Shown here piece after piece: positions 10,917-62,043 of a stretch of DNA of 64,000 nucleotides. Each line of letters begins with the position of its first letter. Within the stretch, counting starts at the first letter, position 1. The DNA lies in assembly GCF_964204645.1 (NCBI RefSeq), contig NW_027437448.1:46712-110711 (forward strand), given 5' to 3'. Below the pieces are notes generated by a model, which saw only the letters and a list, made by a program, of their open reading frames with translations, was not told the origin of the DNA and searched no databases. The position numbers and the translations under genes are program-made. The stretch comes from Tubulanus polymorphus (lineage: Eukaryota; Animalia; Nemertea).

Positions 10917-13900
10917 ATGGATAGTGTGGAAGCCGTAGCTGTAGAACAGACCGCTGAACTCACTAATAAACCGGTAATTCGTAGATTCGTTCCAACCGAT
11001 CATGATTTGGAAGCCTCTTTCCGACTCACTAAATTTGCCGACCTGAAAGGATGAGGGTGTAAAGTCCCCCAAGAAGTTCTGCTCAAACTTCTGGAGGGAC
11101 TTCAAGAACAGGAAAGCAATGAAAGTGTAGTCGCAGGAGATGGTGGAGATGGAACCTATGGATACGGTGCCGGCGGTGCTGCTGCACAGTTACCTAGAAT
11201 CGGTAAGTTGTTCATTGCTGGTCCCGAGCCCGAGGAGCCACGTTCAACTTCACGCACATTTTTCATTTCCGAATAAACTTCAAATTCTTATAATTTATCG
11301 CCATCTGATTCGATAAAAATGATTATTTATTATATTTGAAACATTTGAACAAGAATCAGTTTTATTTAGCGGTCTATTTATGGTTAAAATGGTGATCTAA
11401 TTTCATCGATTCATCTCCCGTTCGTTTCTCTTATTTTCAACATGGCGGATCAAGTCGAGTCACATGATCTGTATATTTGTAAACACGAGCACGTGTTCAA
11501 CTACTGGTTCGTCGACTGTCACATGTTTACGACGAGTGGGTTCGAATCCTGAATTAATGGTGTTTGTATTTGTTATTTCAGGTATAGGAATGGATTCGTG
11601 CGTGGTACCTCTGAGGCAACCTAATTTATCATTGGTGCAAACAACTGATTTTTTCTACCCATTGGTTGATGATCCGTACATGATGGTATCTTTTTAGATT
11701 TTTTGTGACGTTTTTTTATCCTGGCAGCTTGAGGTGGCCCGGATTGAGGGAGGTGCTGAGACAGGCTGGGTCACTCAGCAGCTGATATATTATATAACTG
11801 ATTTTGGTATATGTATTTTAGGGTAAGATAGCGTGTGCTAATGTATTGAGTGATCTGTATGCTATGGGTGCAATGGATTGCGATAATATGTTAATGCTGT
11901 TAGGAGTCAGTCAGAAGATGAGTGATAAAGAGAGAGATGTCGTCGTTCCTTTAATCATGAGAGGATTCAAGGTAAAAATCTCCTAAATCATTATTTATAA
12001 GTCCGTACTTCAATTCATGGTAAAATACTAAACTTCTGTTAAGATGTCTATTTGTGACGTAGTTTTTTGAGTAACACAAGTTGAGGCTTTACTTCAGACA
12101 CCTGCACCTGTAGTTGTGGTTATATATTGTAGGATACAGCTGAAGAGGCAGGTACCGCTGTCACTGGAGGTCAAACTGTTCTCAATCCATGGTTAACTAT
12201 TGGGGGCGTGGCTACATCAGTCTGTCAATCAAATGAGTTTATCATGTAAGTTTTTTGTTCGAAGTCTTTTTCGTTAAATTGAGATTCCGTATTTTAGTGT
12301 TTGTGTATTTACGCTAGGCCCGATGATGCGGTAGCCGGGGATGTTTTAGTGTTAACCAAACCGTTAGGAACGCAAGTAGCGGTAAACGCTCATCAGTGGT
12401 TGGACGTTCCTGAAAAATGGAACCGTTTAAAATTAGTCGTCAGCGAAGAAGACGTAAGAAAAGCTTATCACAGAGCGATGACTAGTATGGCTAGACTGAA
12501 TAGAACAGGTTCGTACACCTCCCCTCATCCCCCTCCCTATCCTCTCTCCCTTCCTCTCCCCTTCCCTCATCCCTCTAGACTGAATAGAACAGGTTCGTAC
12601 ACCTCCCCTCATCCCCCTCCCTATCCTCTCTCCCCCTCCCCTATCCTCTCCCCTTCCCTCATACCTCTAGACTGAATAGAACAGGTTCGTACACCTCCCC
12701 TCATCCCCCTCCCTATCCTCTCTCCCCCTCCCCTATCCTCTCCCCTTCCCTCATCCCTCATACCTCTAGACTGAATAGAACAGGTTCGTACACCTCCCCT
12801 CACCCCCCTCCCCTATCCTCTCTCCTATCCTCTCCCCCTCCCCTATCCTCTCCCCTTCCCTCATCCCTCCCCCTCTAGACTGAATAGGACAGGTTCGTAC
12901 ACTTCCCCTCATCCCCCTCCCTATCCTCTCTCCTATCCTCTCCCCCTCCCCTATCCTCTCCCCTTCCCTCATCCCTCCCCCTCTAGACTGAAAAGGACAG
13001 GTTCGTACACTTCCCCTCATCCCCCTCCCTATCCTCTCTCCTATCCTCTCCCCCTCCCCCTCTAGACTGAATAGAACAGGTTCGTACACCTCCCCTCATC
13101 CCCCTCCCTATCCTCTCTCCTATCCTCTCCCCCTCCCCTATCCTCTCCCCTTCCCTCATACCTCTCCCTTTAGACTGAATAGAACAGGTTCGTACACCTC
13201 CCCTCATCCCCTTCACCCCCCTCCCCTTTTGTCCCTCCCCTCTTCATCCCCCTTCTTTCTCTAGACTAAATAGAACAGGTTCGTATACCCTCTTCCCTCC
13301 TCATCTCCCCAAACCCCCTCCTCCCCTTCACATCCCCTCCCTCTCCTCCATCCTCTTCATTAGACTGAATCAAACAGGTTCATCTCTCCTCATCCCCTCT
13401 CCCTCCACCCTCTCCCCTCCCCTGTCTCCTCTCCCCTCCCTTCCCTCATCCATCTTCCTCTAGACTGAATAGAACAGGTTCGTACACCCCTTACCTCCTC
13501 TCCCTCTATCCTCCCTCTGATCTTCATCCCCTCCCTCTCCCCTTTCCTCCCTCTTCTCATCCCCCACCCCTTCCATCTCCTCTTTTCCTCTACCTACCAC
13601 CCTCTCCTCCATCCTCTCCTCCATCCTCTCTCCCTGTACCTACCACCCTCTCCTTAATCCTCTCTCCCTCCATCCTCTCTCCCTCCACCCTCTCCTTAAT
13701 CCTCTCTCCCTCCCTGTGGTGTATATAATAATTAATTGTTTATATTTGTAGCTGCGAAATTAATGCATAAATACAGCGCTCACGGTGCAACAGATGTCAC
13801 TGGTTTCGGGTTGCTAGGACACGCTAATAATTTGGCTCGTATTCAAAAACGTGAAGTCAGTTTCGTTATTCATAATTTACCGGTTATCGCTAAGATGGCC

Positions 13901-14282
13901 GCCGTTAGTAAAGCATGCGGAACTACGTTCGGTTTATATCAGGGGATGTCAGCTGAAACATCAGGTTCGTTCATTTCTCTGTCTATGTGGCTGTCTGTCC
14001 GTGTGGCTGTCTGTCTGTCTGTGGCTGTCTGTTTGTCTGCCTGTTTTACTGTAATCTCAGTATTTATTTATTGATCTGTTTTGTTTATAATTGATAGGTG
14101 GATTATTAATCGCGTTGCCACGGGAACAAGCCGCTGCGTTCTGTAAAGATATCGAGAGACAGGAAGGATATCAGGCGTGGATTATCGGAATCGTCGAGAG
14201 GGGTAACCATACAGCACGGATCATCGAGAAACCTCGAGTGATTGAGGTCCCGGCCAAAGAGAAAGACAATGAATCGTGGTAG
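10917..14282 (+). CDS. SEPHS2: Selenophosphate synthetase, Sec-containing (SPS2-type), 413 aa
   Basis: Exons 10917-11202, 11582-11685, 11822-11971, 12133-12245, 12318-12508, 13752-13964, 14098-14282 (1242 nt). Motifs [74 protein letters not shown]. In-frame TGA at 11052-11054 (codon 46), missed by the ORF track. Confidence 0.95.
11055..11102 (+). promoter_or_regulatory. GGGTGT hexamer plus Sec-redefinition-element (SRE)-like stem-loop after the UGA
   Basis: TGA-GGG-TGT, then AAGTCCC(11062-68)/GGGACTT(11096-102) and CCAAGAAGTT/AACTTCTGG pairing. Confidence 0.8.
12491..13490 (+). repeat. Polypyrimidine tandem repeat carrying 10 extra copies of the SEPHS exon-5 end and donor site
   Basis: (C)TAGACTGAATAGAACAG|GTTCGTACAC at ~12575, 12667, 12766, 12875, 12983, 13062, 13171, 13261, 13361, 13461. 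Confidence 0.95.
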
Positions 14283-14572
14283 AGCCCCCTGGTGGTGGAC
14301 TCGAGAAACAGCCCAGTAGCGTAATTCCACAACACTTGGTTATAATAATCATTTAAATCCATTCGTCTCGGGTTCGAAAATAATCATCACATTTCATTGC
14401 ATTTAAAATTTGATGAATTGTATAAAAATCATGAAAATTATCGTCCATATTTTTGATTGTTTTATGAAGAATTTTGAATCCAATAATAGAGTCGGTTAGT
14501 TACTGTTGGCATGAGCAACCACTGTACTATAAACTCCGATGAAATACCGATTTATCTAAACCATATCGAGAT

Positions 14573-14665
14573 ATTCTGCAACTTTCTTGATGAAATTATT
14601 TAGAGAAATTAAACTCATGGTTGATTCTAAATAATGGATGTTTTTATGAATGAAAGTTGTGGAAT
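14573..14665 (+). promoter_or_regulatory. SECIS element (type II-like) in the SEPHS 3'UTR
   Basis: Helix I TTCTGCAACTTTC(14574-86)/GAAAGTTGTGGAA(14652-64); core ATGAA(14590-94)/GGAT(14636-39); perfect 10-bp helix II ATTATTTAGA/TCTAAATAAT; apical AAA at 14606 with a mini-stem; AATAAA at 14703. Confidence 0.9.
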
Positions 14666-16656
14666 TTGGTTTTTATGTCGGTTTTAAACTAAACTATGAT
14701 TCAATAAACTAATTTTATAAGATAGAAATTTGCTTTTTATGTCGTTGGTTTTAATTCCTGCTGCCTGGGGTCTGGTGTCTGTAGATCGATAGGGTCCATT
14801 GAAGTATCCCAGTGATCCAACATTATCAGCTATCTATAGTCAATCTCTGACTGGTTTAGGGTGTAAGTCTATACAATGTACCGTTATTATCTCGATGAGA
14901 GTATATGACAGTGTATTTGGGGATGTTTTGTGCCTACTTTTCATAAAAATGCTGAAAATGCTACTACGCTGAAGTCTAATAAGTAACTTAAAAGTTTCTG
15001 AAAAATACTTGTAAAATGGATATACATGTAATGCGTAGAGCAAAAAATTAAAAGCCAAGCACACATCACTTAATGTGCCCTATTTGGTCCCGTGAGATAC
15101 GAGGAAAATGCAAACTAGTCGAGTTTTAGTCAAATATTGACTGAATTCTATTCCTGGGAAATAAAATAATATTTGCTTCAAATTCTTCCTGTGGCATGTG
15201 AATCTGCCGCTTTACCGCTTGCAACTACATCCGCTGAGTAACGAGTTCTATTAAACGTGGCTTGAAAATTTATTTCAAAGTCAGATTCATAATGATAAAG
15301 CTTTAATCCCAATAAAATGATGCATTTAAAACAAACTTATGTTAAGTGATGAATGAAATTTGACTTGGTTGAAAATATCTGCAATCTTATTCTTCGCATG
15401 CCACAGTAGACAAGCGAGGATGTATTAAATCTCATCCGTTCAGTGCTGCCTCTACGAACAACGATAGCGGAATTTCATTGAACTAATGTATTTACACTAT
15501 GGACCACTGTGGCACCTAATTCTAATATTGTTGTAATCATTTGAATAGGAACTATGGTATTATGAATCATGAATTGTGATTTATATATTTTTAGATAACT
15601 TATTCTCAATTAGCAAAAAACTATTTTGCTTATCAATTACTGATCAGAATAAGTCATCATCATTTTTGAATGATCAATTATCCAAATCATTGACAAAACC
15701 GCCATTATTTCCTGAGAAAATCGTCATTTGGAATACGGAACAAATCCCGAAATAAATTCGGGATTCGAACTTACAAACATTGCATTGTGGGATAAGCTAC
15801 CCTAGCGGTGATGGAACAAACTACAGTAAATATAATGAGATAATTTGTGAAAAATGACAGGTTAATAAACGATGTTCACAGGTAAATATTGAACTAATCT
15901 CAGTATTATAAACACAGTATCAAACATATAAATCAGTTGCATATACTGTATCGCTGAGGAATGGGGCCTGGCTGCATGCAGCAGCAGCAGCATCAGCATC
16001 CTCTGCAGCATCCTCTCTATCCAGCAGTCTCCATCTTCCTACCCTCAATCACTGTGGTGTATCCTGCATCACAGCCTCTCTTGCTGCTTCTTACACACAG
16101 TGTTGTTGCGTTAAACTGATAAATGCTGGATGCAGCAGCACTAACCGGGTCACTAGTCGGTGTCAGCTGCTGGCGGCCGTTACAGAAAGCTGACAGGAGC
16201 GTGGAGGAGGTAGCTACCCTACCCCTAGTATACTACTGACACTGACACTGCCTACACTGCTGCTGATACCATACCTCTCCCTTACCCTCCCCATCTCCCT
16301 CCCTGTCCCCTCCTCTCTCCCCTCCCTCCCACTCCCCCTCTCCCCTCCTCTCTCCCCTTCTCTCCCTCCCCTCCTCCCTCTCCTCCCACTCCCCCTCTCC
16401 GCTCCTCTCTCCCCTCCATCCCCCTCTCCCCTCCTCCCTCCCCTCTCCCCTCCCTCCCCCTCTCCCCTCCTCCCTCCTATCTCCCCTCCATCCCCCTCTC
16501 CCCTCCTCCCTCCCCTCTCCCCTCCCTCCCCCTCTCCTCCCTCTCCTCCCACTCCCTCCCTGATTATTATTTCATTTGTTTAATTTTTATATTTTTCATT
16601 TCAGGATTTTGTGATTAATTCAACTACAACAATGTAAGACAGTTGAACTCTGAGCC

Positions 16657-19600
16657 ATGAGACGTAAACTATCAGAGGAAGAGCCGCGATCAGTGGCGGA
16701 TAAAACCACCAATAGATGGCGTACTAATCGACAATCTAAACACGACGAATCGGACAACAATGCGAAACCGATAGTAACCGGGCGAAGGTCGAGGTCAAAT
16801 TCGCCGAGGATTCGTAAATCTCCGAAAGAAGAGAAAAAGAAAACTTTAAAACGAAAAAAAGAGGAGGAAAGTAAAGATGAAGATAAGAGTGAAGAGGTTG
16901 ATAGTACAGCGGTGACACCTAGTGTGAAAAAACGAAAACTCACGGACACCGGTCAAGCTAAACCTAAACCTAAACCTAAACCTAAACTTAAAACTAATCC
17001 TAAACCTAAAAGGATCAGTAAAAAACTTGTCAAAAATGACAATCAAAATACGAAAACTGCAGCGCCCTCTAGTGGTGAAACCAGTATAGCAGCACCCTCT
17101 AGTGGTGAAACCAACCAAACAGTGACCTCTAGTGGTGAAACCAGTACAGAACAAGCGCCACCTAGTGGTGAATCCGGTACAACAATAGTGACATCTAGTG
17201 GCGAAACCAATCAAACAGCGACCTCAAGTGGTGAATCCAGTAAAACGCTAGTTACCTCTAGTGGCGAAACTAATGCCGCGGCGACCTCTAGTGGTGAAAC
17301 TAAAGAATCGAAACCAAAATCGAAACCTAAAAAACGAGCTTCCAAAAAAACATCAAAAACATCGAATACATCGAATACATCGAATACTGCTGATCATGAG
17401 AAACCAGTAAAAAAACCTCGAAAACAGAAAAAAAATGATCTCACAAAAAAAACCGAATTATCTACGGAGAATGGAACGAGTAATGGACAAAATTCAGACG
17501 ATAAAAAACCAGAAAATAATTCAGAAAAACCGATAAAATGTGAACAGAAAAAACGAGTAAAATCAGATTCGGAAAAACGAAGTTTAATTTGTGAAAAATG
17601 TGGATTTATTACAACAACGAGAACTTTATTAAAGAAACACGACGACCGTTGTCATAAAGAGGGTAACGAGGAATATATCAGAGACAATCCGTTTAAATGT
17701 ACCGTTTGTGACTATCGCGCTAAAAAACTAGGAGTTATTAAAGGACACCTTAAAAAACACGGGCTACGAATGTGTCATTACTGCGAGTTTACTGCCGAAC
17801 AAAACCAAGTGGAAATTCACGAGAGGAATATCCACTCAGATCGCGTAACGTCTAAACTGTGTAAAACGTGTCAGCGATATATCAAATGCGACAGCGATGA
17901 TTTCGAAACGCACTTCGAAAATTGCGACGGCAAGAAACGTCCGTTTGTTTGTAAAACGTGCGGTAAAGAATACGAATACGCATCGGCTTTAAAAATGCAT
18001 TCATTCACTCACGATAGCGGTCCGAAAAAATATCACTGCGAAAAGTGTCATTATAAAACGCATTATAAAATCAACCTTCAGAAACACATGGCAAACAAAC
18101 ACGCGGAAAATCGCGAGAAAAATATCCCGTGCCCGGAGTGCGAGAAAAAATTCTTCAACGAGGATAATCTTCGACGCCATCTTGTGTCGCATAGCGAAGA
18201 TCGTCCGTACTCGTGCGAGGAATGTTCGAAATCGTTTAAAACCGGAGTCGCTTTAAAGGGTCATTTAGAAACTCATATAACCGATCGACCCTACGCTTGC
18301 GGTATCGATTCCTGCGGTAAATCATTTAAAAGTACGAAACTATTACGTTTACATCAGGATGATATTCATAAACTATTACCACGTAAATTCAAGTGTAATT
18401 TCGATGGATGTGATTATATATTCTTTAAAAGCAGTCATTTAATCAGACATAGAGCTACGCATACAGGTTAGTTAGTTACAGTATCTGTACACCAGGGGGC
18501 ACTAACTGTTAACCCTTCAGCCCTGTAGTTCACGTATTAATAGATGATACTCGTGTTGTGATGGGATTTAAAAGGATTGGCGAATTTAATCAAGTTGAAT
18601 CAGAGAGAAAATCCTCCATTTTGTGAAATTTCTCTTGAATTTTAACTACGCCTAATACCTGAAATAAATGAAGTTATTTTTCTAGGGGTCACATGAACAA
18701 CATCAGGGCAAAAAATGGAAGAAATTTTGTGTGATTTAACATAAAACTCATTCATTACTAAACTCCAGCCTCTTCACGGATGATGAAATGTAAAATGCTG
18801 TAAATGTAGAATATTTTGTGTGTAATATTTATAGGTGAGAGGAAGTACGCGTGTGATTGGTCGAATTGTGGTAAAGCGTTTCGTCACGCCGATAACCTTA
18901 AAGTACATTACAGACAACACACTAATGAGAAACCGGTGAAATGTCATCTGTGTGACTTCGCTTGTCGTCAGAGAAATTCATTAACCTGGCATCTTAAACG
19001 TCAACATCCCGAAACCTCCATAGATGGCGCCGATAACGGTAACTATAGTAACGGTTCGACGGAGGTAGAGGAGGACGCCTCGGTCCAGGTGGCGCCGGTA
19101 GTCGTCGCCGCAGCCGTCGTAAAAAAGAAGAGGATTTATAAACGTCGGAAAAAAGTGGAGAAAGTCGAGGAATTAGAGGAGAAAAAATCGGAAACTGGTG
19201 AAAAAATCGGTGAATTGGGATTATTGAAAATATTGAGTAATTTAGAATTATTAAACGAGGAGTCGTTCGCTGATTGTGAGGACAGTGAGATTGAAGAGAT
19301 TGTGAATCTAACAGATCCTACAGCAGCGGCGGCACGCAGGAGAAAACGTAAAACAGACGGCAGCAAAAAACAACAAAGAGTTTATCAAAAACGAGCCTCT
19401 AAATCTATTAAACCTAAACCAGTAGAAACAGAGACAGCTGCTGTCTCAGCTACTGCACCTGATGTAGAACTAGGAGAAACAGCTGCTGAACCAGTGGTAG
19501 AATCGGAAACAGCTACGGAAACAGCTGCTGATCCTGCTGCAGAACCATCTACAGAAACTGCAGCATCGGCAGCCGAACCAGATACAGAACCATCTGTTGA

Positions 19601-22004
19601 ACCATCTCAACCAACTGTAGAACTAGTGAACGAACCAATCCTAGAACCATCGACTCAAATATCAGAGAATGATGATACTGAAGAGGAAGAAGGAGATCGT
19701 AAACAAATAAGAAGGATTCTGAGTCCACGAACTCGTAAAACAGCAGCAGCAGGTGCAGGTGCTGGTGCAGCAGGTGCTGGGCCTCGTAACTGGTTGATAA
19801 ACAGTAAATCAATAGAATCTCAGATCAGTGAAACTGATATTTATAATTTCACATCAGACGACGAACAAACTAGTGTTAATCCTCCTCCTATAGGTGGCGC
19901 TACTTGTGTTAGTAATAACGATGATAGTACGCGTAACGACCACCAGGTGGAAGAGTCACCGAGCGTCGATAGTAAGAGCGTTATAGATAAGATGAAAGAG
20001 AGGTATATCACGGATGAGAAAAGTCCGGTGGTTGCTTTGAGTCCGTTAGATATAGCTAAAATAGAGATCAAACATAACATTCATATACCTGATAATACAG
20101 CTGCACCTGCTGCTGCTGCTGCTGCTGCTGCTGAACAGCTTACCGACGGTCAACAAACAACATCTGCACCTGCGGTTGAACAAACTATATGCGCTGAACA
20201 AATTGCATCCGCACATCTGGAACAACCGGCATCTGTACCTGCTGAACTTATAGCATCTGCACCTGAGGTTGAACAAACTGCATCTGTTGAACAAACTGTA
20301 CCAGCTGAATCTACAGAAATGGCACCTGATTCTATAGAACAAATGGTATCTGTATCAACGGAACAAACAGCACCTGCATCTACAGAACAAATGGTACCTG
20401 AGTCTACAGAACAAATGGTATCTGTATCCGGTGATGACTATATGACTAGTAGTGGTGATACAGTGCCCCCTGGTGGTGAACTAGGAGTATATACAGCTGC
20501 AGCTGCGGATGATGATGATGATGAGATGATTAACAGTATTCATCCTTCGCAACAATTATTCGATAACGAAGAGAAAGAGAATGATGAAGATGTGAATGAT
20601 ATAAATATCGCTCGTTGTGAAGGAGAAATAATCGACCGTCAATTGTTACAGAAATATTTAGAAGACGCAACGATGGACGAGTTTGAAAAAGAGCAGTTGA
20701 TTAAAGATACCGAACCAAAAACAGAACCATCGGGTTCTACAACATCCACTGCGGAACATCAGTGGAAACCTGATCCACAACCCGATCCAAAATCAATTTC
20801 CACTTCCACCAGCTCCACCGCCGCGTGGTCCACTGTAGATCACGATAAACTATTAACGCATAGCGTTGAGCGTCTCTACGACAACAGTTCATTGTTACAA
20901 CCTAGCGGCGGTGAGCGTATAGATGGCGCTACTATGTATCGACCGGATCTGAATGGATTTTACGATACTCGAGGCGCGAGCGGATTGATACATCCTCCGC
21001 TGTATCCGGCATCCGGATACTCAACTCCGGTCGTTAATAAAGATACGTGTTCACCTCGCGGCGATCCGTTAATCTACAGCCAATCAGCAACTCCGTATTT
21101 ACCGTTAGCTACGAGTATGAACCAATCAGCACCGGCGTACCTCGACCCCTATAACGCCGCTCCGCATAGACAACAATACGATAACCCGTTAGGTAGCCTA
21201 GCGATGAGTACGGCTAAATATATCGAATCAGAGGTCAGTAAAACTGTAGAACGTCGAGTTTACTCGCAGCAGGGCTGGGCTTTACAAGAGACTCAATCAC
21301 TACGTCTTACTCATTCATTATTCCCACCGGGATCGCATCAGAACTGGGAATCGAGCAGCAGATCGGCTGCAGCTGCAGCTGCGTCTTATCCTTATATAGA
21401 TACCTCGTCTAGATCGTCTGCTTATCTCCCCGGGCAACCGCCTCCCGATACGTTAGATAAACAGACATTTGATCGTTACGATCACATGGCTTATTTAAAC
21501 TGTCGTCATCCGGCGATCGGTCAACATCCCGGTTTTAATCAACTACCGCCGCCGCTAGGGGGCGCTTCGAAGGCTTTATCGGATCAATATCGTAGCGATT
21601 ATCACCGTAGTTTCTCGACTCAAGCTACGACTGATTTATATTCGACGATGGATAAATATTTTTATCCTCGGGATTCGATGTATTCTCCTCATCAGAGAAT
21701 ACATCAACCGGTCGGTTTACAACCGGATCATCATCATCATCATCATCCATTCTCACCAGCGGGGGCGCCACCTGCACCCGCTCCTCAACATAACTACGTA
21801 CCTCGCGAGTATCCGACCTCACGGTATCCGCAAACTAATCCTTACGATTTCATACCCGATCCTAAACAGTATCCGGATACAGGTAAATATTCACAAGGCG
21901 CGCCGATGCAGTTTATACCTCGAGCCGGTTCGACTACAACTCACGATCCATATAGATCAACAATGCCTCTTTATAACATGATGAATCACCGTGGTTACAT
22001 GTAA
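16657..22004 (+). CDS. Multi-C2H2 zinc-finger protein (~1659 aa), last finger ZFP91/ZNF692-like
   Basis: Coding exons 16657-18466 and 18835-22004 join in frame at the HTG|ERK linker; about a dozen C2H2-type fingers; CHLCDFACRQRNSLTWHLKRQH resembles recalled ZFP91 CEICGFTCRQKASLNWHMKKH; long acidic and Pro/Tyr-rich tail; probable 5'UTR intron ~15882-16604. Confidence 0.9.
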
Positions 22005-24274: not shown

Positions 24275-27200
24275 TGAGAGGATGTACAAGGGTGTCCCGG
24301 GTTCGAACCCAGTAATTACTGATACTGGTTCAGAGTGGTCCTGATGCCGCGAATAAAGGATGTACAGGGGTGCCCCGGGTTCGAACCCAGTTATTACTGA
24401 TACTGATTCAGAGTTGTCCTGATGCCGAACAGGGGCATCCCGGCCGTACGGTGCTGCCTCTATGCTCATCGTTAGCGGGTTTATCATACACTAACGTAGT
24501 CGACTCTGGCAATCGACGTGCTGTCCAGTTATACTCCGTAACCCTAGCATGCCAGAGTTGACTTCCGTTAGTGTATGAAAATCCCGCCAACAATGAGCAT
24601 AGCGGCAGCACCGTACGGGGGATTGTTGATACACAAAAGTATTACTGATACTGGTTCAGAGTGATGCTGAAAAGAGGATGTGCAGGGGTGTCCCGGGTTC
24701 GAACCCAGTTACTGATGCTGATTCAGAGTGTAGTCCTGATGCTGAATAGAGGATGTACAGGGGAGTCCCAGGTTCGAACGTGGGAATCAATGACACCATG
24801 ACAATAAGTTCGCCATCTATTGGAATTTTGCTGAACTGTCAAAATCATAGAATTGACAATACCAAAGGTTTAGAAAGAACCATGTTTCTCATACGCCATC
24901 TACCGGCATATAGAATCATTAAGCATAGTGTCCCGGGTTCGACTGGGAATCACTGACACTGAATCAGAATAGTCCTGATGCTGTATAGAGGATGTGCAGG
25001 GGTGTCCCGGGGTCGAACCCAGTAATTACAGATACTGGTTCAGTGGTCCTGATGCCGAATAGAGGATGTACAGGGGTATCCCGGGTTCGAACCCCTGAGT
25101 CATTACTGATAATGGTTCAAAGTGGTCCTGATGCTGAATTGAGGATGAACAGGGGTGTCCCGGGTTCAAACCCAGTAATTACTGATACTCTGGTTCAGAG
25201 TTGTCCTGATGCTGAATAGAGGATGTACAGGGGTGTCCTGACCGTACGGTGCTGCCGCTATGCTCATCGTTAGCGGGTTTTTCATCCACTAACGTACGTC
25301 GACTCTGGCAATCGACGTGCTGTCCAGTTACACTCCGTAACCCTAGCATGCCAGAGTTGACTAACGTTAGTGTATAAAAATCCCGCTAACAATGAGCATA
25401 GCGGCAGCACCGTACGAGGAAATGTTGATATACAAACTGTATTACTGATACTGATTCAGAGTGGTACTGATGCTGAATAGAGGATGTAATGGGGTGTCCC
25501 GGGTTCAGACCCAGTAATTACTGATACTGATTCAGAGTTGTCCTGATGCTGGATAGAGGGTGTACAGGGGTGTCCCGGGTTCGAACCCAGTATCATTACT
25601 GATACTGATTCAGAGTGGTACTGATGCTGAATAGAGGATGTAATGGGTTGTCCCGGGTTCGATCCCAGTAATTGCTGATACTGATTCAGAGTGGTCCTGA
25701 TGCTGAATAGAGGATGTACAGGTGTGTCCCGGGTTCGATCCCATGACAATAAGTTCGCCATCTATCGGAATTTTGCTGAACTGTCAAAATCATAGAATTG
25801 ACAATACCACGGTTTTAGATTGAACCATGTTTCTCATACGCCATCTACCGGCATATAGAATCATTAAGCATAGTGTCCCGGGTTCGAACCTGGAAATCAC
25901 TGACACTGATTCAGGGTGGTCCTGATGCTATAGCGGATTTACTGGGGTGTCCCGGGTTCGAACCCAGTAATTACTGACACCGATTCAGAATGGTCCTGAT
26001 GCTGTATAGAAGATGTACAGGTGTGTCCCGGGTTCGATCCCATGACAATAAGTTCGCCATCTATCGGAATTTAGCTGAACTGTCAAAATCATAGAATTGA
26101 CGATACCAAGGTTTTAGAATGAACCATGTTTCGCATACGCCATCCACCGGAATATAGAATCATTAAGCATAGTGTCCCGGGTTCGAACCTGGGAATCACT
26201 GACACTGAATCAGAATAGTCCTGATGCCGAATTGACGATGAACAGGGATGTCCCGGGTTCGAATCCAGTAATTAGTGACACTGTTACAGAGTGCATGGTC
26301 CTGATGCTGAATAGAGGATGTACAGGGGCATCCCGGCCGTACGGTGCTGCCGCTATGCTCATCGTTAGCGGGTTTTTCATACACTAACGTAAGTCGACTC
26401 TGGCAATCGACGTGCTGTCCTTAGGCGTTTTTATGGAAGCCCTGAGACGACATCTTGAGTTTATGAGTTCCCCAGTTCATAACTTCCTGAGTTCTCAAAT
26501 TCATGAATTCCTGTGTTCGTTTGATGACAAAAAGCCTGCGATACTTTAACATCGAACGTTAACACGATGTTCTATGAAAGACCCGCGTCTAAGGCTCAAG
26601 ACGACACTGTATAACCAGCAATTAACGGCATGTTGAAGGGAGAAGGGCGCCTCCGTTCTGCCGGCATGTAGCTCGAGCGGCTCCGATTTTCTGTACGTGG
26701 TAGTGGGTGACTCCGATTCACTGCCGACTCTCGATGTGTCTGTTCAGGTTTTAATTATAATGGAGACAAACGCTCATTATTAGACATTTTTAACATCTTT
26801 TGATTTTCTATAAACCATCAAGAAAGCAGATAGCTGATGATAGACTGGTTGCCGGTCTACCATCAGTTGACTGCCAGTGCAGGATGATTGGACACAGTCA
26901 ACCAGTCTAGGTTGATGTGAGACATAACTTTTGTAGTTAATTCATGGCGAAAAAGGATTTGACATCCTTAGAATATGATGTTTTTTAAGTCGCGTTATTT
27001 CATAGTTTGCCAAAATGCACAAATAAACTCAAAATCTCATAAACTCAGGAAGTGATGAACTGGGGAACTCATAACCTCAAGATGTCGTCTCAGGGCTTCC
27101 ATAGTTTTAAGTTATACTCCGAAACCCTAGCTTGCCAAAGTTGACTTACGTTAGTGTATGAAAATCCCGCTAACGATGAGCATAGTGGCAGCACCGTACG

Positions 27201-27358
27201 GGGAAATGTTGATATACAAAAGTAAATACTGATACTGGTTCAGTGATGCTGAATAGAGGGTACAGGGATGTCCAGGGTTCAAATCCAGTAATTACTGATA
27301 CTGATTCAGAGTGGTCCTGATGCTGAAAAGGATGTACAGGGGCGTCCCGGGTTCAAAT
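24275..27358. repeat. Composite satellite of ~75-bp units containing GTCCCGGGTTCGAACCC, interleaved with foldback elements
   Basis: Repeated GATGCTGAATAGAGGATGTACAGGGGTGTCCCGGGTTCGAACCCAGTAATTACTGATACTG; ~170-bp foldbacks at ~24445-24617, ~25242-25416 and ~26337-27200 (interrupted); ~140-bp block at ~24797, 25742, 26041. Confidence 0.9.
26432..27103. mobile_element. TIR element (~670 bp) nested in the loop of a foldback element
   Basis: ~60-bp TIRs TATGGAAGCCCTGAGACGACATCTTGAG... / ...CTCAAGATGTCGTCTCAGGGCTTCCATA; the two sister foldbacks lack it. Confidence 0.85.
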
Positions 27359-27669: not shown

Positions 27670-29079
27670 CTATCTGAAATGTTTTCCATCTAAAACACAA
27701 TTCATTTCTTTCACGCTTTGTTTAACGCAATCAACGAATTCAGAAACATTCGTCTCCGGGGGATACGACGTAACAATACAACCGAGTTTATCAGCCATTA
27801 TAGCGTAACCTACAACACAAAGAGCAACACGATTAACAGAAGAGAGGGGAGTGAGGGGGAGGGGGAGTGAGGTGGAGGGGGGAACTCACCTATACCATAT
27901 CCATCAGATACAACTGGAGCAAATCCACCAATCAGAACAGAAGGACTGCTCAATGTAGAGGTAGATATGATGTTATGGTTGAGTAGATTATACCCGGGCT
28001 CCTCGTAAATATCTGGTAATTTATCACCTCGATTTAAACAGATCGATTTCATCGCGAATAAATGACGATCAAAACCTTGACCTGAAAATATAAATCACAC
28101 GACAATAGAAAATAGAACAGCAACCTAATCCTAATCCTAATCCTAATCCTAATCCTAATCCTATAAAATGTCTAATGTCTGGTGATTGTAGTTAAGCCCT
28201 GAATACATGTGAAGTGTGGACTATCAGTTTTTTAACTGGTCTAATGTCTGATGTTTCATGGTGAAGTCCTCATCCCTGAATTAGACTTACCCATCGCAGC
28301 ATTTTTAGTCAGTTCATTATGTTTATCGGAACATTGTCTGATAGAATTTTCCATCTCTTGCGGAGAAGCTTCAGACGTGGTTGTATTAAACATTTCACTA
28401 GTATTTCTAGTAAATAAAGTACAAGGTCGAATAGTTTCAGTTCTACCGTGTTTAAACGCTGATGTACTGCATGATTCATACGAACCGACTGTTCTTCCAT
28501 TTGATTGTTTATGGTAAGCCATCTGTAAAATAAATACATCATTGAACCATGTACGGTACGCGACATCAGACATTATTATCAAACACTCACCTGAAACGCT
28601 AATTGCATAAAAGCATCCGGACTGATTTTCTTACTTTTCAAATATTTGCTTCCGAAAGCATCCATCACGAAATAATCCAAATCTAAAGTTTTAACTTTCT
28701 GATCGAATTTCTCTAAAGCCGTTTTGATGCCGCTTTTTACTTCATCGTTCAATTGAAACTCTACAAATAGAAAACAAACTGATTTAAATCTAGAATTGTA
28801 AATTGATAAGTTGTAAATTGAAAGTAGTAAATGCCACTGACTGATTCGTCGAACGGATTGCGATGAATCGATACTCGATGGTTTGGAATCGGGATGAACG
28901 CTCGGATTCGACGTCGTATCTTTAAATACTTCGTTGAAGAATCTGAGTACAGCAACGCCATCTCCCCACGAGTGTTCAAAATTCACACTAGCGGTTCCAT
29001 CAGCAGCAAATAACAGAGAAAATGATTTATCATACCACCTACAATATACAATAAACAACTCTACAACTTACAACTGAGC

Positions 29080-29112
<33 letters not shown>

Positions 29113-32919: not shown

Positions 32920-32935
32920 TTTGAATTTTTAGAGC

Positions 32936-52141: not shown

Positions 52142-55100
52142 TTATACGTCATAAAATAATCGTGATAATTGATATCTTATCATAAATGCAACAATGCTGC
52201 AAAATACCTAAAAAAAACAATAACAGTTTAAACATTAGTTTAATCTATTGATATTAGCATAAAATCATTAGAAATCAAAACTTACTTGAAAAGCAAGAAG
52301 AATCACTGTGAGTGATCTCTCATGAGTCGGACCAATAATTGATAAAATAAAATTAATCAGCGTAAAATTATTACATTCGACAAATTTTCCGTCGTCGCCG
52401 AGATTGTACTTAATATCGATAATACGCAACACAGCGAATAAACGCACTAAAACACGGCCGAATAAACCGAGGTCTTCAACGCGGAATTTTACTAAACTCA
52501 TTCCTAATTTATTCGTTTTAGCATCAAATCTAAAATAAATAATAAAAACATTCTATGAATAAATGGAACAGGAGTGAGGGAGAGGGGGAGGGGAGGAGGA
52601 TGGGGAGGAGGGGCGAACTGAGAGATGAAAATCTTACTTTGGTAAACGATGTCTCGGACACGGCACGAAGTGAAACAGCTGAGGAACCGAATAAATAAAA
52701 TTCAAAACTTGCGGAATAAAAAACAGTAACATTGTTTTACTGAAGTGACTGAGAATCGCGACGACTGCGAACGTCATTCCGGAAAAATAACAGAATGTGT
52801 CTCCGACAAATACAGCAGACGGATACCTGGAAATATATACAATCAATCAAATCAATCAATCAATCAGACAGTCAGCTAACCAATCAACTAACCAGTCAGC
52901 CAGCAAGTCAGCCAGCTTACCACAGCCAGCCAATCAATCGACAAACCAGTCAGCTAACTAACCAACCGACTAATCAGACAGCCAACCAATCAGCCAAGTA
53001 ACCAGTCAGCTAACTAACCAGTCAGCTAACTAACCAACCGACTTATCAGTCAGCCAAATAGTCAGCATACAAACAAACCAACTGATCAGCCAGCCAACCA
53101 GTCAACTAACCAACCAACTAATCAGCCAGCCAACCAGTCGGCTAACCAACTAATCAGCCTGCCAACCAGTCAGTCAGTTAATCAATTATTCACTGATAAA
53201 TTACTGCCATATTTTTACTTACCAGTTGTAATACATTAATGCTAATGTAACGGCCAGATAAGGCATCATGAATATCAGTGAAAATACGTGATCATTATTA
53301 AAATCACCTGAAATATAGAATTTATTCATTTTAGCATTAATTAGCATGAATTATAAACGGTTATAATCGAATGTTGATGATTCATACCTCGTAATTCGAT
53401 CAGATTGAATATAATAACTGATATAGAAATGATGACACTTTGACCGCATTCTAATCCATTTATACCGGCTAATATATTAATAGCATTAGTACAGAATACA
53501 GCCAGCATTCCCATATACACATAATACAATAAACCTACAAATATAATACATATATCAATCAGCTGACACACGTAATACTCATTGTATCAATCAGCTGACA
53601 CACGTAATACTCATTGTATCAATCAGCTGACCCCAGTAATACTCATTGTATCAATCAGCTGACACGCGTAATACTCATTGTATCAATCAGCTGACCCCAG
53701 TAATACTCATTGTATCAATCAGCTGACCCCAGTAATACTCATTGTATCAATCAGCTGACCCCAGTAATACTCATTGTATCAATCAGCTGACACACGTAAT
53801 ACTCATTGTATCAATCAGCTGACCCCAGTAATACTCATTGTATCAATCAGCTGACCCCAGTAATACTCATTGTATCAATCAGCTGACCCAGTAATACTCA
53901 TTGTATCAATCAGCTGACCCCAGTAATACTCATTGTATCAATCAGCTGACCCCAGTAATACTCATTGTATCAATCAGCTGACCCCAGTAATACTCATTGT
54001 ATCAATCAGCTGACACACGTAATACTCATTGTATCAATCAGCTGACCCCAGTAATACTCATTGTATCAATCAGCTGACCCCAGTAATACTCATTGTATCA
54101 ATCAGCTGACCCCAGTAATACTCATTGTATCAATCAGCTGACCCCAGTAATACTCATTGTATCAATCAGCTGACACACGTAATACTCATTGTATCAATCA
54201 GCTGACACATGTAATACTCATTGTATCAATCAGCTGACACACGTAATACTCATTGTATCAATCAGCTGACACACGTAATACTCATTGTATCAATCAGCTG
54301 ACACATGTAATACTCATTGTATCCACGGATACTTACTGAGATTTAAATCGTATCCTAGCAACGCGCGTAGCGGTTTAGGTACAATAATTGTAGTGGATCC
54401 AAAATTCACGAAATAAACCATTAACAACGGAAGAGACGCCATCGTAGGCAGCAGCAACTTGTGGCGCCATCTTAAATCTAAAACATCGTCTGCGAACCCG
54501 AGGAATATCATACAACAGATCGACAGCAGAGCAGAAATAAACTCGACCAACTGAAATATATACATACAATTAACAACAGGAGCGGGTACTCGATTCAGGT
54601 GTTAGGAGTGGGTACTCGATTCAGGTGTTAGGAGTGGGTACTCGATTCAGGTGTTAGGAGCGGGTACTCGATTCAGGTGTTAGGAGCGGGTACTCGATTC
54701 AGGTGTTAGGAGTGGGTACTCGATTCAGGTGTTAGGAGTGGGTACTCGATTCAGGTGTTAGGAGCGGGTACTCGATTCAGGTGTTAGCAGCGGGTACTCG
54801 ATTCAGGTGTTAGGAGCGGGTACTCGATTCAGGTGTTAGGAGCAGGTACTCGATTCAGGTGTTAGGAGCAGGTACTCGATTCAGGTGTTAGGAGCAGGTA
54901 CTCGATTCAGGTGTTAGGAGCAGGTACTCGATTCAGGTGTTAGGAGCAGGTACTCGATTCAGGTGTTAGGAGCAGGTACTCGATTCAGGTGTTAGCAGCA
55001 GGTACTCGATTCAGGTGTTAGCAGCAGGTACTCAATTCAGGTGTTAGCAGCAGGTACTCGATTCAGGTGTTAGGAGCAGGTACTCGATTCAGGTGTTAGG

Positions 55101-55667
55101 AGCGGGTACTCGATTCAGGTGTTAGGAGTGGGTACTCGATTCAGGTGTTAGGAGCCGGTACTCGATTCAGGTGTTAGGGGCAGGTACTCGATTCAGGTGT
55201 TAGGAGCAGGTACTCAATTCAGGTGTTAGCAGCAGGTACTCGATTCAGGTGATAGGAGCAGGTACTCGATTAACCCCTGGCAAGTGAGGATGAAGTACTT
55301 ACACGTTCATGTGGAAATGCCTGTAATATTTTCCCTTCCGCGATATGTTGATAAAATACGACTGGTATAAACAGGAATAGAACTAATAGATAAATAGCTC
55401 CGCACAAGACGCCTTGAGCCTCAGGTCTGTCAAATATAAACCACAAATATCAGAAATTACAATTCATATGTTAATGAAAGAAACAGGACAATAAAGGGAA
55501 GCAACTTACACTTTGACTTTTGTCGTTTTGCTCAAATCAATGCCGAATAAATTGGCTTTAATGAACATCTGTTTGAATCTAGGAATTAATCTGAATGTCA
55601 CAATGAACGCGATTATTGATAAAAAAGCGTTTGATAACAATAAATAACTCTGATTTGCGGCATACAT
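52142..55667 (-). CDS. DPAGT1: UDP-GlcNAc:dolichyl-phosphate GlcNAc-1-phosphotransferase (ALG7/GPT), 8 exons
   Basis: [82 protein letters not shown]-terminus [12 protein letters not shown]. Confidence 0.97.
53553..54322. repeat. 32/33-bp minisatellite filling a DPAGT1 intron
   Basis: GTAATACTCATTGTATCAATCAGCTGAC(CCCA/ACAC), about 24 copies. Confidence 0.97.
54578..55271. repeat. 24-bp minisatellite filling a DPAGT1 intron
   Basis: GGAGCRGGTACTCGATTCAGGTGTTA-like unit, 24-26 bp by eye, roughly 27-29 copies. Confidence 0.9.
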
Positions 55668-57192
<1,525 letters not shown>

Positions 57193-57736
57193 TTTCATCA
57201 AAATATACCATATTTCAAAAACAGTTTTTCTAAGGACAATCTAAGGTGGGCTGGTCCTCGAGTGATGGGTTTAGTTTATTCAATGTTTATGTTCAGTATT
57301 TTTTTTCTGGAATCTTCTGAATTCATTCATTTAACAAATAAAATAATGTAAATACATGTACTTAAAATCTCTACAAACTTCACTACTTTGAGGATGTGAA
57401 ATCATTGATACCTTTAAATTCCGCTAGATGGCGCATGAGTCGCCAGTAAGATGCAGCGTTACGCTCGAACATGACTTGTTGGTCATTCGTTCAGCTAAAT
57501 GGTACCGGTATATGAATCGCGACACCCCTCGTCATTGAGGAATCCATTCCCAATATCAGACATTGGGACCGTAAAAACTTGACTTGACATAAGACTGTGA
57601 AACTGACCCCTGTAGTGATATGTATGATACGATATAGCAGAAACATTTAGTACAAATACATATAACTTATTTATTTTGAAGGAATTGATTTCAAAAACAC
57701 ATTCATCATTTTTATTTCATCTTCATTTTATCCTCT

Positions 57737-60700
57737 TCATTTCTTCTCTTTCTCTGCGAGATATTTATAATGTAGTTTCATCGTATCTGTTTGAGAAACT
57801 TTAATCCAACCATCTTCCTTCATGTGATACACTACAAAACATACAACATCCTACATTGTGGTGGGCAGTATGAGAGGAGAGGGCAGTATGAGAGGAGAGG
57901 GGGGTGGAGAGGGGGGGTATGTTAAATCGCACACTTTTACCCTAACCATCTCCTCCTCATGGATGTTTTTATATATGCACCTCGTTCCCCCTTTAAGACA
58001 TGGGGCCACACCATTCGATCAACCTCCCTTTTATTCAATCAAATCTTTTACCCTAACCGACTATCTCATGGATGGTTTTGTATGTAATCTCCCTTATTGA
58101 TGGTGCATATAGCATATCCCCTCATTCCCCTCACGTATGGAGGGAGGAAGGGAGGGGTGGATTGAATACTCACAGTTAACGACACCTCCGCTGTACGCGT
58201 CTCTATGAGTGGCGTGATAAATAGACCTCACTCCCAGTTCATACGCTTCCTCTACAGATAAATCATATCTATATCCGTCGTCTAAAACCCCGTAAGCGTA
58301 CGGAGATCCCGATCCAACGGAGAACAGATTACCGGATAATCTCTGACCGTCGCTGTCAACATAGAATAATCCGGGCCCCTACAATTATACAATACCAGAA
58401 ACTAGTTAATAACACCCCCTAGTGGCCAGTCGGTAAAATACTGGAATAATGAATTACTTATACTTACTCTCTTGTCCCAACCAACGATCATAGTTCCCTA
58501 GAATAACAAAATAAAACAATTCAACATAAACAAAGAGAAATACAGAGAGAGGGAGGAAGGGGAGAGAGAGGGGAGAGTAAGAGGAGAAAGGGAGGAGAGG
58601 GGAGAGGGAGGAAGGGGAGAGTAAGAGGAAAAAGGGAGGAGAGGGGAGAGGGAGGAAGGGGAGAGTAAGAGGAGAGGAAGGAGAGAGTAAGAGGAGAGGA
58701 GAGAGGGGAGGAGAGAGGGGAGAGAGGAGAGAGGGGAGGAGAGAGGGAGGAGAGAGGGGAGAGTAAAAGAGGAGGGGAGAGGGGAGGAGAGAGTAAGTGG
58801 AGAAAGGGAGGAGAGGGAAGAGGGGAGAGGGAGAGAGAGGGAGGGAGGAGAGGGGAGTGAGCAAAAGAGGGAGAGGGGAAAGGGAGGAGAGAGTAAGAGG
58901 AGAAAGGGAGGGGAGGGGAGAGGGAGGAGAGAGTAAGAGGAGAGTAAGAGAGAGAGAAGAGAAAGGGAGGAGAGGGAGGAGAGAGGGAGGAGAGCGATGC
59001 TTACCATAGATAAACCCATACCGCGATAGTCATACACAATATTTCCCAATAGTTTTGAAGCCGCAGCAACAGAAATTCTTTCTTTATTCCTCAATTCATA
59101 AATCCTAAAATGAAATGTTTATAACATGTTTGATAAACTGCACCAGAGGAGGAGTTGTGACCGGGTGTGGACCAACTGACCGGACTAGATGTAGTGTATA
59201 CTGACCGGACTAGATGTAGTGTATACTGACCGGACTAGATGTAGTGTATACTGACCGGACTAGATGTAGTGTATACTGTCCGGACTAGATGTAGTGTATA
59301 CTGACCGGACTAGATGTAGTGTATACTGACCGGACTAGATGTAGTGTATACTGACCGGACTAGATGTAGTGTATACTGACCGGACTAGATGTAGTGTATA
59401 CTGACCGGACTAGATGTAGTGTATACTGACCGGACTAGATGTAGTGTATACTGACCGGACTAGATGTAGTGTATACTGACCGGACTAGATGTAGTGTATA
59501 CTGACCGGACTAGATGTAGTGTATACTGACCGGACTAGATGTAGTGTATACTGACCGGACTAGATGTAGTGTATACTGACCGGACTAGATGTAGTGTATA
59601 CTGACCGGACTAGATGTAGTGTATACTGACCGGACTAGATGTAGTGTATACTTACCGGACTAGATGTAGTGTATACTGACCGGACTAGATGTAGTGTATA
59701 CTGACCGGACTAGATGTAGTGTATACTGACCGGACTGGATGTAGTGTATACTGACCGGACTAGATGTAGGGTATACTGACCGGACTAGATGTAGTGTATA
59801 CTGGCGGGACTAGATGTAGTGTATACTGGCCGGACTAGATGTAGTGTATACTGACCGGACTAGATGTAGTGTATACTGACCGGACTAGATGTAGTGTATA
59901 CTGACCGGACTAGATGTAGTGTATACTGACCGGACTAGATGTAGTGTATACTGACCGGACTAGATGTAGTGTATACTGACCGGACTAGATGTAGTGTATA
60001 CTGACCGGACTAGATGTAGGGTATACTGACCGGACTAGATGTAGTGTATACTGACCGGACTAGATGTAGTGTATACTGACCTGGCTTCTCTTGCTAGAAC
60101 TCTCTCCCAGAACATACAATCAGCAGCGCCACCTGCCATCGTACCCAACAGAAACGGGTTGATTTCAATCACTTTCTTCACAGTCTGTGACGCTATCAAC
60201 ACAAACAAACAAACAATAGATTGAGAGATCTCCTGATTTTACTGTTTGATAATCCTTCAATACAGCGTAATACACAGTTTCACTGGTCGCGTATTGAGAC
60301 GATATTGAGGTATGTATTCAAAGGATTAAGCGAAACATCCCCAAAAAATTGATCCCAGATAAAAATAAATAATTTCAGCTCTCTCTGGACAGGACGCAGA
60401 GTGCCAGTGGTTCAGGGAGGGAGGGGGAGGGTATCAGTTGCTTACCGATGAGAGGTCCTGCTGAAGCTCTCGAATCCACTGCAACTATCACACCTTCTTT
60501 AAATTTAAATGCTAAAGTTGTCGTTCCATGATCGAAATGTATTTTCATCGGACTTTCATCATCAGTCAACTCGTTCAAACTTCTCCGACCCTGACACAGC
60601 GAACAAGCAATAAAATAAATTGACAATTGATTGAATATTGAATATTTTGTAACTGTCTGATTCTGTGATGATAAGAATGAAACTCACGTCATAATTCGGA

Positions 60701-60816
60701 GGTACCACAAATCTATCCTGTTCCCCAAAAGTGACATCGCTATTTCGAGCATTTAAAGGGTAAACTTGCGTTTGAAACTGTTTTTTATCGAAACGACAAA
60801 TCTCAGCGAGCGCCAT
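57737..60816 (-). CDS. PSMB5: Proteasome subunit beta type-5, 7 exons
   Basis: Propeptide then HG|[80 protein letters not shown]; stop at 57737-57739. Confidence 0.95.
59176..60080 (-). repeat. 25-bp minisatellite (~36 copies) starting at a PSMB5 donor site
   Basis: Minus-strand unit GTCAGTATACACTACATCTAGTCCG; the first GTCAGT is the real donor after the exon end at 60081. Confidence 0.97.
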
Positions 60817-61143
60817 GATGACTTTGGGTATTTATGCCGTCAGGTGCTGCCATCTAGCGCTTTTACAAATATATTCCTCTAGACTGGTTACCGGTCTCGT
60901 TTGAATGGGACAGTCAGCCAGTCTAATACTCCTGCCGTACGACTGATGAAATCCGATGACATTTAGGGTCAGGGTTAGTTAGAATTTTATCTGGCTGGTA
61001 AGGCAAAATCACTTCAAACCCGACAGTCGGTTTCCGGTTGGCTCCGGTTAATTCCGGTCGGTTTCAGTTGGTTATTAGTAGAAGCCGTCAAGTCAAATCC
61101 AATTAAATGTTATTGAAAGTTACTTCCGGGTTGGTTGATAGAA
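60817..61143. promoter_or_regulatory. Bidirectional promoter PSMB5/SMIM13
   Basis: 327 bp between divergent ATGs; ACTTCCGGGT at ~61122 and other TCCGG motifs. Confidence 0.65.
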
Positions 61144-62043
61144 ATGAATGAGATTTTTCTATCAATATTTTCACTCGTCGCTTCCCTTCTTGTTGTCATA
61201 TTATTCATATTTTTAGGTATGTTTCAGTTTTATTTATGTTTATTTCCGACGCTCACTTGAAGTATTTTGTTATTCGCATTTTTTAATGTAAAAGTGAGCC
61301 TCCTCCGGAGCCGACTAGACCCCAGGCCCGGCCCCCAAGCTAGAAGCAAGGTCCATGGGGTAACTTTGCTTTTACCTTATCGTCGGTGGTGCTTTTATCT
61401 TATCGAGAATATCCAGTGGGCTTGTTGAATGATAACCCTACTCTGCTGGTGGGTTCCCCTCCCGGGTAGATGTAACCGGATTTACTGACTGGATTCTCTC
61501 AATCCATGAGACCATATGTTATCAATATGTTACCAAGGCATGGATACCAGTGAATCCACGTTTGCACCTGCGAATCACCATAGAATCTCCAGACAGTCTC
61601 CAGAGATCTAGGTTGTTTTATCCAGTATGAAATTAATTAAATTGTCATGTAGTTTTTATGATAGTGGTTATAGAAAATAAGTTTAAACTGTAGCCGTTGG
61701 ATGTAGCTACTATTTAGTTCACTGATCCAGTTCCAGATCGGCTGTCAATCATTGTTGAATCTGAATATGTGTACATGTTTATTTGCTCTATTAATCTACT
61801 TTTAATTGTTTCTAGGATGGTACATTGTATATATTGTTTATTGTTTCTAGGATGGTACATTGTATATATTGTTTATTGTTTCTAGGATGGTACATTGTTT
61901 GGAAGCTGTTTCTATCGAGGTTTAAATTCATACAAGAATTACTAGGATCTGATGGCTGTAAAAGTGAAGAATCAACAATGAGTCAGCAGCAGGATCAATC
62001 CAAATCAAAAACAACTAGACGACGCAATTTAAGAATTGATTGA
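61144..62043 (+). CDS. SMIM13: Small integral membrane protein 13-like (76 aa)
   Basis: Exons 61144-61216 and 61886-62043: MNEIFLSIFSLVASLLVVILFIFLGWYIVWKLFLSRFKFIQELLG..., matching the recalled family motif GWYxVWxLFLSxFKFxxEL. Confidence 0.88.
61806..61898 (+). repeat. 35-bp triplication of the SMIM13 acceptor site
   Basis: TTGTTTCTAG|GATGGTACATTGT with exon-like starts at 61816, 61851 and 61886. Confidence 0.95.

Follow-up and report, generated by a model that had tools for sequence, protein, structure and literature searches.

Why should a tandem repeat take a splice junction as its unit, and how can a gene tolerate dozens of copies of one of its own splice sites? These questions are raised by a stretch of 64,000 nucleotides (nt) from the nemertean Tubulanus polymorphus, referred to below as the window, which forms the end of an unplaced contig (C31; 110,711 bp) in an assembly of 268 Mb and 77 contigs. 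A first-pass annotation of the window described five arrays in the genes SEPHS, CPT2 (two arrays), PSMB5, and SMIM13 in which a donor or an acceptor site is repeated, and suggested for them a lineage-wide expansion of introns nucleated at exon-intron boundaries, with chance overlap between short introns and a general repeat expansion mentioned as a simpler alternative. The results described here bear out the arrays, and they indicate that the simpler alternative is sufficient to account for them. All coordinates are window positions, except for those prefixed with C31, which are positions on the contig.

Splice junctions as repeat units

Tandem arrays were called using Tandem Repeats Finder (TRF), with repeats of period 10–500 considered as minisatellites, and the copy numbers given are those of one assembly. 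Based upon the TRF results, the sequence itself, and lists of the individual copies, all five arrays proved to be present:

12491–13541, + strand: donor array of SEPHS intron 5, 11 copies; the true donor follows base 12508
29443–30433, − strand: acceptor array of CPT2 intron 6, 53-nt unit, 19 copies; the true acceptor precedes base 29469
30936–31067, − strand: acceptor array of CPT2 intron 3, 35-nt unit, 3.8 copies with 3 acceptors
59175–60081, − strand: donor array of PSMB5 intron 3, 25-nt unit, 36 copies; the true donor follows base 60081
61805–61898, + strand: acceptor array of SMIM13 intron 1, 35-nt unit, 2.7 copies with 3 acceptors; the true exon begins at 61886

The portion of exon carried by the unit differs from array to array. 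The SEPHS unit (79–109 nt) consists of an 18-nt exon tail, the donor GTTCGT and a C/T-rich spacer, and it reads ctagACTGAATAGAACAG/GTTCGTAC, where the slash marks the junction; GT is retained in 11/11 copies (GTTCGT in 10/11 and GTTCAT in 1/11), and the intron reaches a total of 1,243 nt. In the 53-nt unit of CPT2 intron 6, about 30 nt from the end of the intron are joined to 23 nt from the start of the exon (..ttatacag/GTCGTATAGCGCCCCCTGGTGAT), with the AG intact in all 19 copies of this 1,008-nt intron. The unit of CPT2 intron 3 (153 nt) combines ttttacag with 28 nt of exon start, and its three acceptors (ACAG twice, AAAG once) all keep the AG. The decoys in this intron have in common a 1-nt insertion that is absent from the true exon, which indicates that amplification ran among the decoys, as in any minisatellite. 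The PSMB5 unit starts exactly at GTCAGT and contains 0–1 nt of exon; GT is kept in 33 of the 36 copies, the T having been lost in three decoys, while one other decoy now reads GTAAGT, and the whole intron measures 976 nt. Lastly, the SMIM13 copies, each with 13 nt of exon, are 100% identical and retain the AG in 3/3 cases.

Between copies the units are 95–100% identical, but variant sub-blocks are present and the internal variants are ordered, with four unit types in CPT2, seven in PSMB5, and both old and young units in SEPHS. In three of the four old SEPHS units a 30-nt core at the junction is 93–100% identical, whereas the C/T-rich spacer is scrambled.

These arrays, whose four host genes are housekeeping genes, were examined in the context of six gene models of the window, which were curated by hand following ab initio prediction, with their reading frames checked:

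10917–14282, + strand: SEPHS (Pfam match AIRS_C)
27670–31927 and beyond, − strand: CPT2 (Pfam match Carn_acyltransf)
52.3–55.7 kb, − strand: DPAGT1, left unnamed in the first-pass annotation (Pfam match Glycos_transf_4, exon 3)
55928–57192, + strand: SLC35/TPT-type transporter (Pfam match TPT)
57737–60816, − strand: PSMB5 (Pfam match Proteasome)
61144–62043, + strand: SMIM13 (Pfam match DUF4750)

Family identity was established by searching the exons separately against Pfam and PDB; they were joined solely for counting stops, and the exons of all six models are open throughout. The exons that flank the arrays are intact, in frame, and unique within the assembly, and in a search of the animal's own genome PSMB5 and CPT2 were each found to be single-copy.

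The statement in the first-pass annotation that only the outermost copy yields the conserved protein was examined by aligning each flanking exon separately to solved structures. With the exon-attached copy, and with this copy only, the alignments are contiguous: SEPHS exons 5 and 6 meet at residues 250 and 252 of human SEPHS1, the PSMB5 exons at residues 62/63 and 65, the flanks of CPT2 intron 6 at residues 230 and 232 of rat CPT2, and those of CPT2 intron 3 at CPT2 residues 118 and 119. In SMIM13, exon 2 matches the DUF4750 profile from position 27 and both decoys lead to an early stop. The statement is thus true, yet it follows from geometry, as in any junction-spanning tandem array the outermost copy is by necessity the true one, and it does not constitute a separate finding.

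What the decoys would do if used is also clear from the reading frames. A premature stop would be met within 10–55 codons for all decoys save the second SEPHS copy, the use of which would add 84 nt (28 residues) in frame. According to a position weight matrix (PWM) built from the 34 curated introns, the decoys match the true sites in score (10.6 versus 10.7 for the true site in PSMB5, and identical in CPT2 and SMIM13), and use of the innermost decoys would shorten the intron to an ideal size, 54 nt for CPT2 and 101 nt for PSMB5. If these single-copy essential genes work, a strict choice among identical decoys would be implied. Three of the eight substitutions in the PSMB5 array strike the T of GT, which hints weakly at decoys being selected against, although two of the units concerned are adjacent and may reflect one event.

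Chance, duplication and the rival readings

The repeats of this region are overwhelmingly intronic. In the six curated genes minisatellites cover 59% of the intron bases versus 1.4% of the exon bases, and overall they account for 14% of the sequence in the window; in the first 40 kb of the contig the figure is 32%. Collapsing each array to a single unit brings the median length of the 34 introns to 82 nt. With introns of about 80 nt, most random duplications of 25–100 nt that are not purely exonic will include a GT or an AG. The number of junction-copying arrays was therefore compared with a null model in which the 12 intronic arrays, each with its own unit length, were placed at random over all segments that are not purely exonic. 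Under this model 4.7 arrays are expected to include GT or AG and five of the 12 do so [P(≥5) = 0.54]; if the shortest TRF periods are used instead, the expectation is 4.2 and P(≥5) = 0.40. The unit lengths (25–99 nt for the junction-copying arrays and 12–40 nt for those internal to introns) are as the chance model predicts, and the exonic share of the unit, 0.04 at the lowest and 0.80 at the highest, shows no significant departure from a uniform distribution (Kolmogorov–Smirnov p = 0.55). A lineage-wide expansion nucleated at junctions is consequently not needed to explain five arrays where 4.2–4.7 are expected and no exon register is preferred, and the simpler alternative, in which short introns and general repeat expansion produce overlap by chance, fits these same numbers.

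The first-pass annotation also counted three introns filled nearly end to end by minisatellites. The filling itself was confirmed (89–96%), but the number of such introns is four:

31254–31587, − strand: CPT2 intron 2, 13-nt unit, 25.7 copies, wholly intronic, 334 of 376 nt (89%)
54578–55271, − strand: DPAGT1 intron 2, 26-nt unit, 26.7 copies, wholly intronic, 694 of 752 nt (92%)
53553–54323, − strand: DPAGT1 intron 3, 32-nt unit, 24 copies, wholly intronic, 771 of 802 nt (96%)
58545–58994, − strand: PSMB5 intron 4, low-complexity array, 450 of 507 nt (89%)

Further duplications of the junction-spanning kind are present on the contig, two of them upstream of the window and one, of a much larger unit, inside it:

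C31:13877–15088: UBE2V donor array, 39-nt unit, 31 copies, upstream of the window
C31:22198–22491: aminomethyltransferase (AMT) donor array, 48-nt unit, 6 copies, upstream of the window
32017–52585, − strand: macrosatellite between DPAGT1 and CPT2, 2.36-kb unit, about 8 copies, 96–99% identity

The UBE2V exon matches residues 1–53 of UBE2V1, and its donor sequence GGTTAGT is intact in 31/31 copies; the exon neighbouring the AMT array matches GCV_T. The macrosatellite unit comprises the terminal exon of DPAGT1 together with the acceptor and some 56 nt of the intron that precedes this exon, and it contains no long open reading frame (ORF). The gene-attached copy of the exon is open, whereas at least three of the seven decoys, the three that a fixed-offset translation read in register, are interrupted by an in-frame stop at a position where the true exon has Leu. 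The macrosatellite is thus a large-scale tandem duplication that spans a junction. The minisatellites of the contig that copy a junction are balanced between the two types, with four of donor and three of acceptor type, in addition to this one acceptor-type macrosatellite. Tandem duplication acts at every scale here, and the duplications that persist leave one intact copy attached to the gene.

The explanation that we favour, and consider likely, is that these are ordinary minisatellites, which arose by local tandem duplication in a repeat-prone stretch where introns are about 80 nt in length, and that their copying of junctions is due to chance. The arrays would be born locally by slippage or unequal exchange. 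Selection would remove purely exonic duplications, but a duplication that is intronic, or that spans a single junction, would leave an intact site attached to the exon and could therefore persist and amplify. With units of 25–100 nt, comparable to the length of the introns, about 40% of the surviving arrays would be expected to copy a GT or an AG. We infer that the genes remain functional since the splicing machinery picks the exon-attached copy, which in donor arrays would be the most upstream one, as in intron 7 of human F7 (IVS7, discussed below), and in acceptor arrays would be the copy beside the body of the exon, as our own reasoning from recognition across the exon predicts. RNA spliced at a decoy and bearing a premature stop would be cleared by nonsense-mediated mRNA decay (NMD), which would hide residual errors. 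The arrays would accordingly represent a tolerated by-product of frequent tandem duplication.

Several considerations weigh against this explanation. The null test comprises 12 arrays from one window and is of low power, so that an enrichment of less than about twofold is compatible with it, and an unplaced, extremely repeat-rich contig of 110 kb may be atypical of the genome. The contrast between core and spacer in the old SEPHS units could reflect conversion from the true copy or constraint instead of neutrality, although it is most simply accounted for by slippage within the low-complexity spacer. Correct splicing is assumed, on the grounds that the genes are single-copy and intact. Moreover, in an animal with short introns, intron definition would be expected, which would favour the innermost decoys, and the tolerance of the arrays is thus not trivially explained.

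Among the other explanations, the nucleation of duplications at junctions, with stalled spliceosomes, R-loops, or breaks at splice sites as the seeds of a lineage-wide growth of introns, is in our judgement quite unlikely. The presence of seven junction-copying minisatellites and a macrosatellite on one 110-kb contig would be in keeping with it, as would the observation that arrays without a junction also begin 8–30 nt from a donor; however, any point of an 80-nt intron is near to a junction. The agreement of the observed number with random placement, the absence of a preferred register in the reach of the units into exons, and the 7/12 arrays that contain no splice site at all argue against nucleation, and the 2.36-kb duplication together with the intergenic arrays indicates that duplication in this region is confined neither to one scale nor to one kind of place.

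It is very unlikely that the arrays, or their copy numbers, are artefacts of assembly. Such an origin might be suspected for a contig that is not placed on a chromosome and that includes a 20-kb macrosatellite, but the CPT2, PSMB5, and SEPHS arrays have ordered internal variants, the exons beside them are intact and in frame and occur once in the assembly, most of the arrays are about 1 kb or less in length, and junction-spanning arrays are known from resequenced loci of amphioxus (PMC3902484).

We regard it as highly improbable that the arrays are functional splicing devices, serving either as recursive (ratchet) sites or as decoys that divert transcripts to NMD and thereby set expression. 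The premature stops that decoy use would bring, the conserved junction core of the old SEPHS units, and the reading of the CPT2 unit as an in-frame 18-nt micro-exon plus a 35-nt intron could be interpreted in this manner, as could the occurrence of AG/GT at every copy in the 19-copy CPT2 array (ACAG/GTCGTA) and in SEPHS (AACAG/GTTCGT). However, AG/GT is missing from the other three of the five arrays (SMIM13, CPT2 intron 3, and PSMB5), and where it is present the reused sites score like background. The donor regenerated in the 19-copy CPT2 array (ATG/GTCGTA) has a score of −1.2 bits, which places it at the 33rd percentile of the GTs in the window, versus a median of 7.3 for real donors, and the AGs before the SEPHS decoy GTs score −7.7 to −1.0 bits (52nd–84th percentile), whereas no real acceptor ranks lower than the 96th. 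No array thus combines AG/GT at each step with a tract of acceptor quality and a regenerated site of donor quality, and the recursive splicing envisaged in the first-pass annotation is not borne out. Additionally, the high identity of the copies marks them as young, their unit, length, and host gene vary as is the case for neutral minisatellites, and the PSMB5 decoys tend toward loss of the GT. A mobile introner or transposon-borne repeat was rejected, as the 53-mer of CPT2 has its own locus as its sole match in the 268-Mb genome, and units that are unique to their locus and contain host-exon sequence indicate a local origin.

Neighbouring features and gene annotation

In practice these arrays matter chiefly for gene prediction: wherever an intron of this genome holds such an array, automatic models will be prone to error. 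The CPT2 unit (29470–30477) can also be read as ag/GTCGTATAGCGCCCCCTG/gtgatt, where the middle segment forms the in-frame micro-exon, and a permissive ab initio gene finder predicted 17 false in-frame 18-nt exons from the units of this array, in addition to false micro-exons from the SEPHS and PSMB5 units and a false exon from a hexamer repeat. The arrays also indicate that short introns are able to grow more than tenfold in one step, and they amount to natural experiments in which identical splice sites compete, the value of which depends upon RNA data. A stronger proposition is that the spliceosome, in an animal whose introns of about 80 nt would lead one to expect pairing across the intron, nonetheless passes over as many as 35 donors or 18 acceptors that are identical to the true site and would give introns of ideal size, and takes the exon-anchored copy every time, with exon-anchored selection dominating at both 5′ and 3′ sites; we put it forward tentatively and consider it unlikely. 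If it were true, these natural arrays, which lie in essential genes and vary widely in unit size and copy number, would constitute a ready-made system to measure this rule, and they could reveal whether array length tunes expression through NMD.

A number of other observations concern the genes described above. The SEPHS gene has an in-frame TGA at 11052–11054, at the catalytic position (..LKG-U-GCKVP..), and the enzyme is probably of the selenocysteine type (SPS2-like) judging from this codon; an Rfam search of the 1.1 kb downstream of the stop codon found no selenocysteine insertion sequence (SECIS) element. A protein search with SMIM13 exon 2 recovered only relatives that are 54–57% identical, and none from T. 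polymorphus. As PSMB5 and CPT2 are each present once in the assembly, a comparison of alleles is impossible and the idea of using a haplotig was given up. A C2H2 zinc-finger gene at 16657–22004 has two long ORFs of 604 and 1,062 amino acids, and its coding repeats, with periods of 24, 30, and 63 nt, are in frame. The periods of these exonic repeats are all multiples of three, which suggests that exonic tandem repeats survive here only with such periods.

The PSMB5 intron 4 array is GA-rich on the + strand and hence C/T-rich in the RNA, and members of its family are present at many genomic sites, often less than 1 Mb from the ends of contigs. In every case counted (about 9/9), the low-complexity C/T-rich tracts or arrays of annotated introns have their pyrimidines on the sense strand. 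These tracts in the window are located at:

12509–13713
27846–27881
52570–52611
56740–56760
57863–57901
58130–58170
58545–58994
60400–60435

The true acceptors in the window are, by contrast, rich in T and G, and tracts rich in C receive poor acceptor scores. At five other loci the exon detector gave no usable exon from which to assign the strand of C/T-rich arrays.

Repeats of other kinds were also noted. In CPT2 intron 11 (28163–28256), a fragment of a satellite of about 109 bp adjoins a (CCTAAT)6.7 run; this satellite forms long arrays on several chromosomes (C6, C9, C10, and C12). No telomeric repeats were found at the start of the contig or at the end of the window, and the idea of a subtelomeric location was dropped. 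Arrays with a 74–78-nt unit and a tRNA-like GGGTTCGAACCC box, resembling the tail of a short interspersed nuclear element (SINE), are present at 24279–27330 and C31:19533–21231, and around 26.3–27.2 kb they occur in both orientations. A 15-mer (AGGTAAAAATCCCCC) at 4023–4096 has a donor-like appearance but was rejected as a further example of junction copying, since it lies in non-coding AT-rich sequence.

Comparison with known systems

Recursive splice sites have as their consensus a pyrimidine tract followed by AG/GTAAGT. The arrays described here resemble the recursive sites of long Drosophila and vertebrate introns in the juxtaposition of AG and GT within the intron in 2/5 cases, but they differ from them in the background-level scores of the regenerated sites and in the three arrays without AG/GT. 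A second point of reference is the Rogers model, in which tandem duplication over an AG/GT proto-splice site gives rise to a new intron. As in that model, an extra donor or acceptor is created and the sequence between the copies becomes intronic; in the present case, however, existing introns are enlarged, no new intron position is formed, and the duplicated segment already contains a working splice site.

The closest counterpart of the donor arrays is the 37-bp variable number tandem repeat in human F7 IVS7, where the first monomer spans the boundary between exon 7 and IVS7 and is followed by 5–9 identical donors (PMC1557585). Minigene experiments show that, although the donors are identical and functional, only the most upstream one is used, by means of a selection that is oriented 5′ to 3′ and operates without competition (PMC1557585). 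The SEPHS, PSMB5, UBE2V, and AMT donor arrays are alike in structure, although F7 is a mammalian gene with fewer copies. The F7 case is silent on acceptor arrays, in which splicing has to use the last copy to be transcribed.

The most similar repeats overall are those of amphioxus Adh3, where tandem repeats that span exon-intron boundaries were named 'mirages', and they are also described in the troponin C, globin (BflGb6/BflGb9), and PGBD5 genes (PMC3087553; PMC3902484). The amphioxus mirages occur at both 5′ and 3′ boundaries, have units of 10–160 bp, retain GT/AG in most copies, and are reported to leave the mRNA normal (PMC3087553; PMC3902484). They have also been suggested as a route to new introns in the globin paper (PMC3087553). 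By this definition the five arrays of the window are mirages: the exon-intron boundary of the host gene lies inside the unit, both donors and acceptors are involved, and GT/AG is mostly kept in the internal copies. They differ in belonging to another phylum, in having 19, 31 (in UBE2V), and 36 copies versus the 3–6 reported for amphioxus globins, in their local density (seven on 110 kb), and in the very short introns, due to which the decoys would give introns of ideal size. Normal mRNA was reported for amphioxus, whereas for the arrays described here, which are known from genomic sequence, it is presumed. They would extend the F7 and amphioxus cases to far higher copy numbers and to 3′ sites, and they represent a known kind of repeat, found here in a new lineage and at an unusually high copy number and density.

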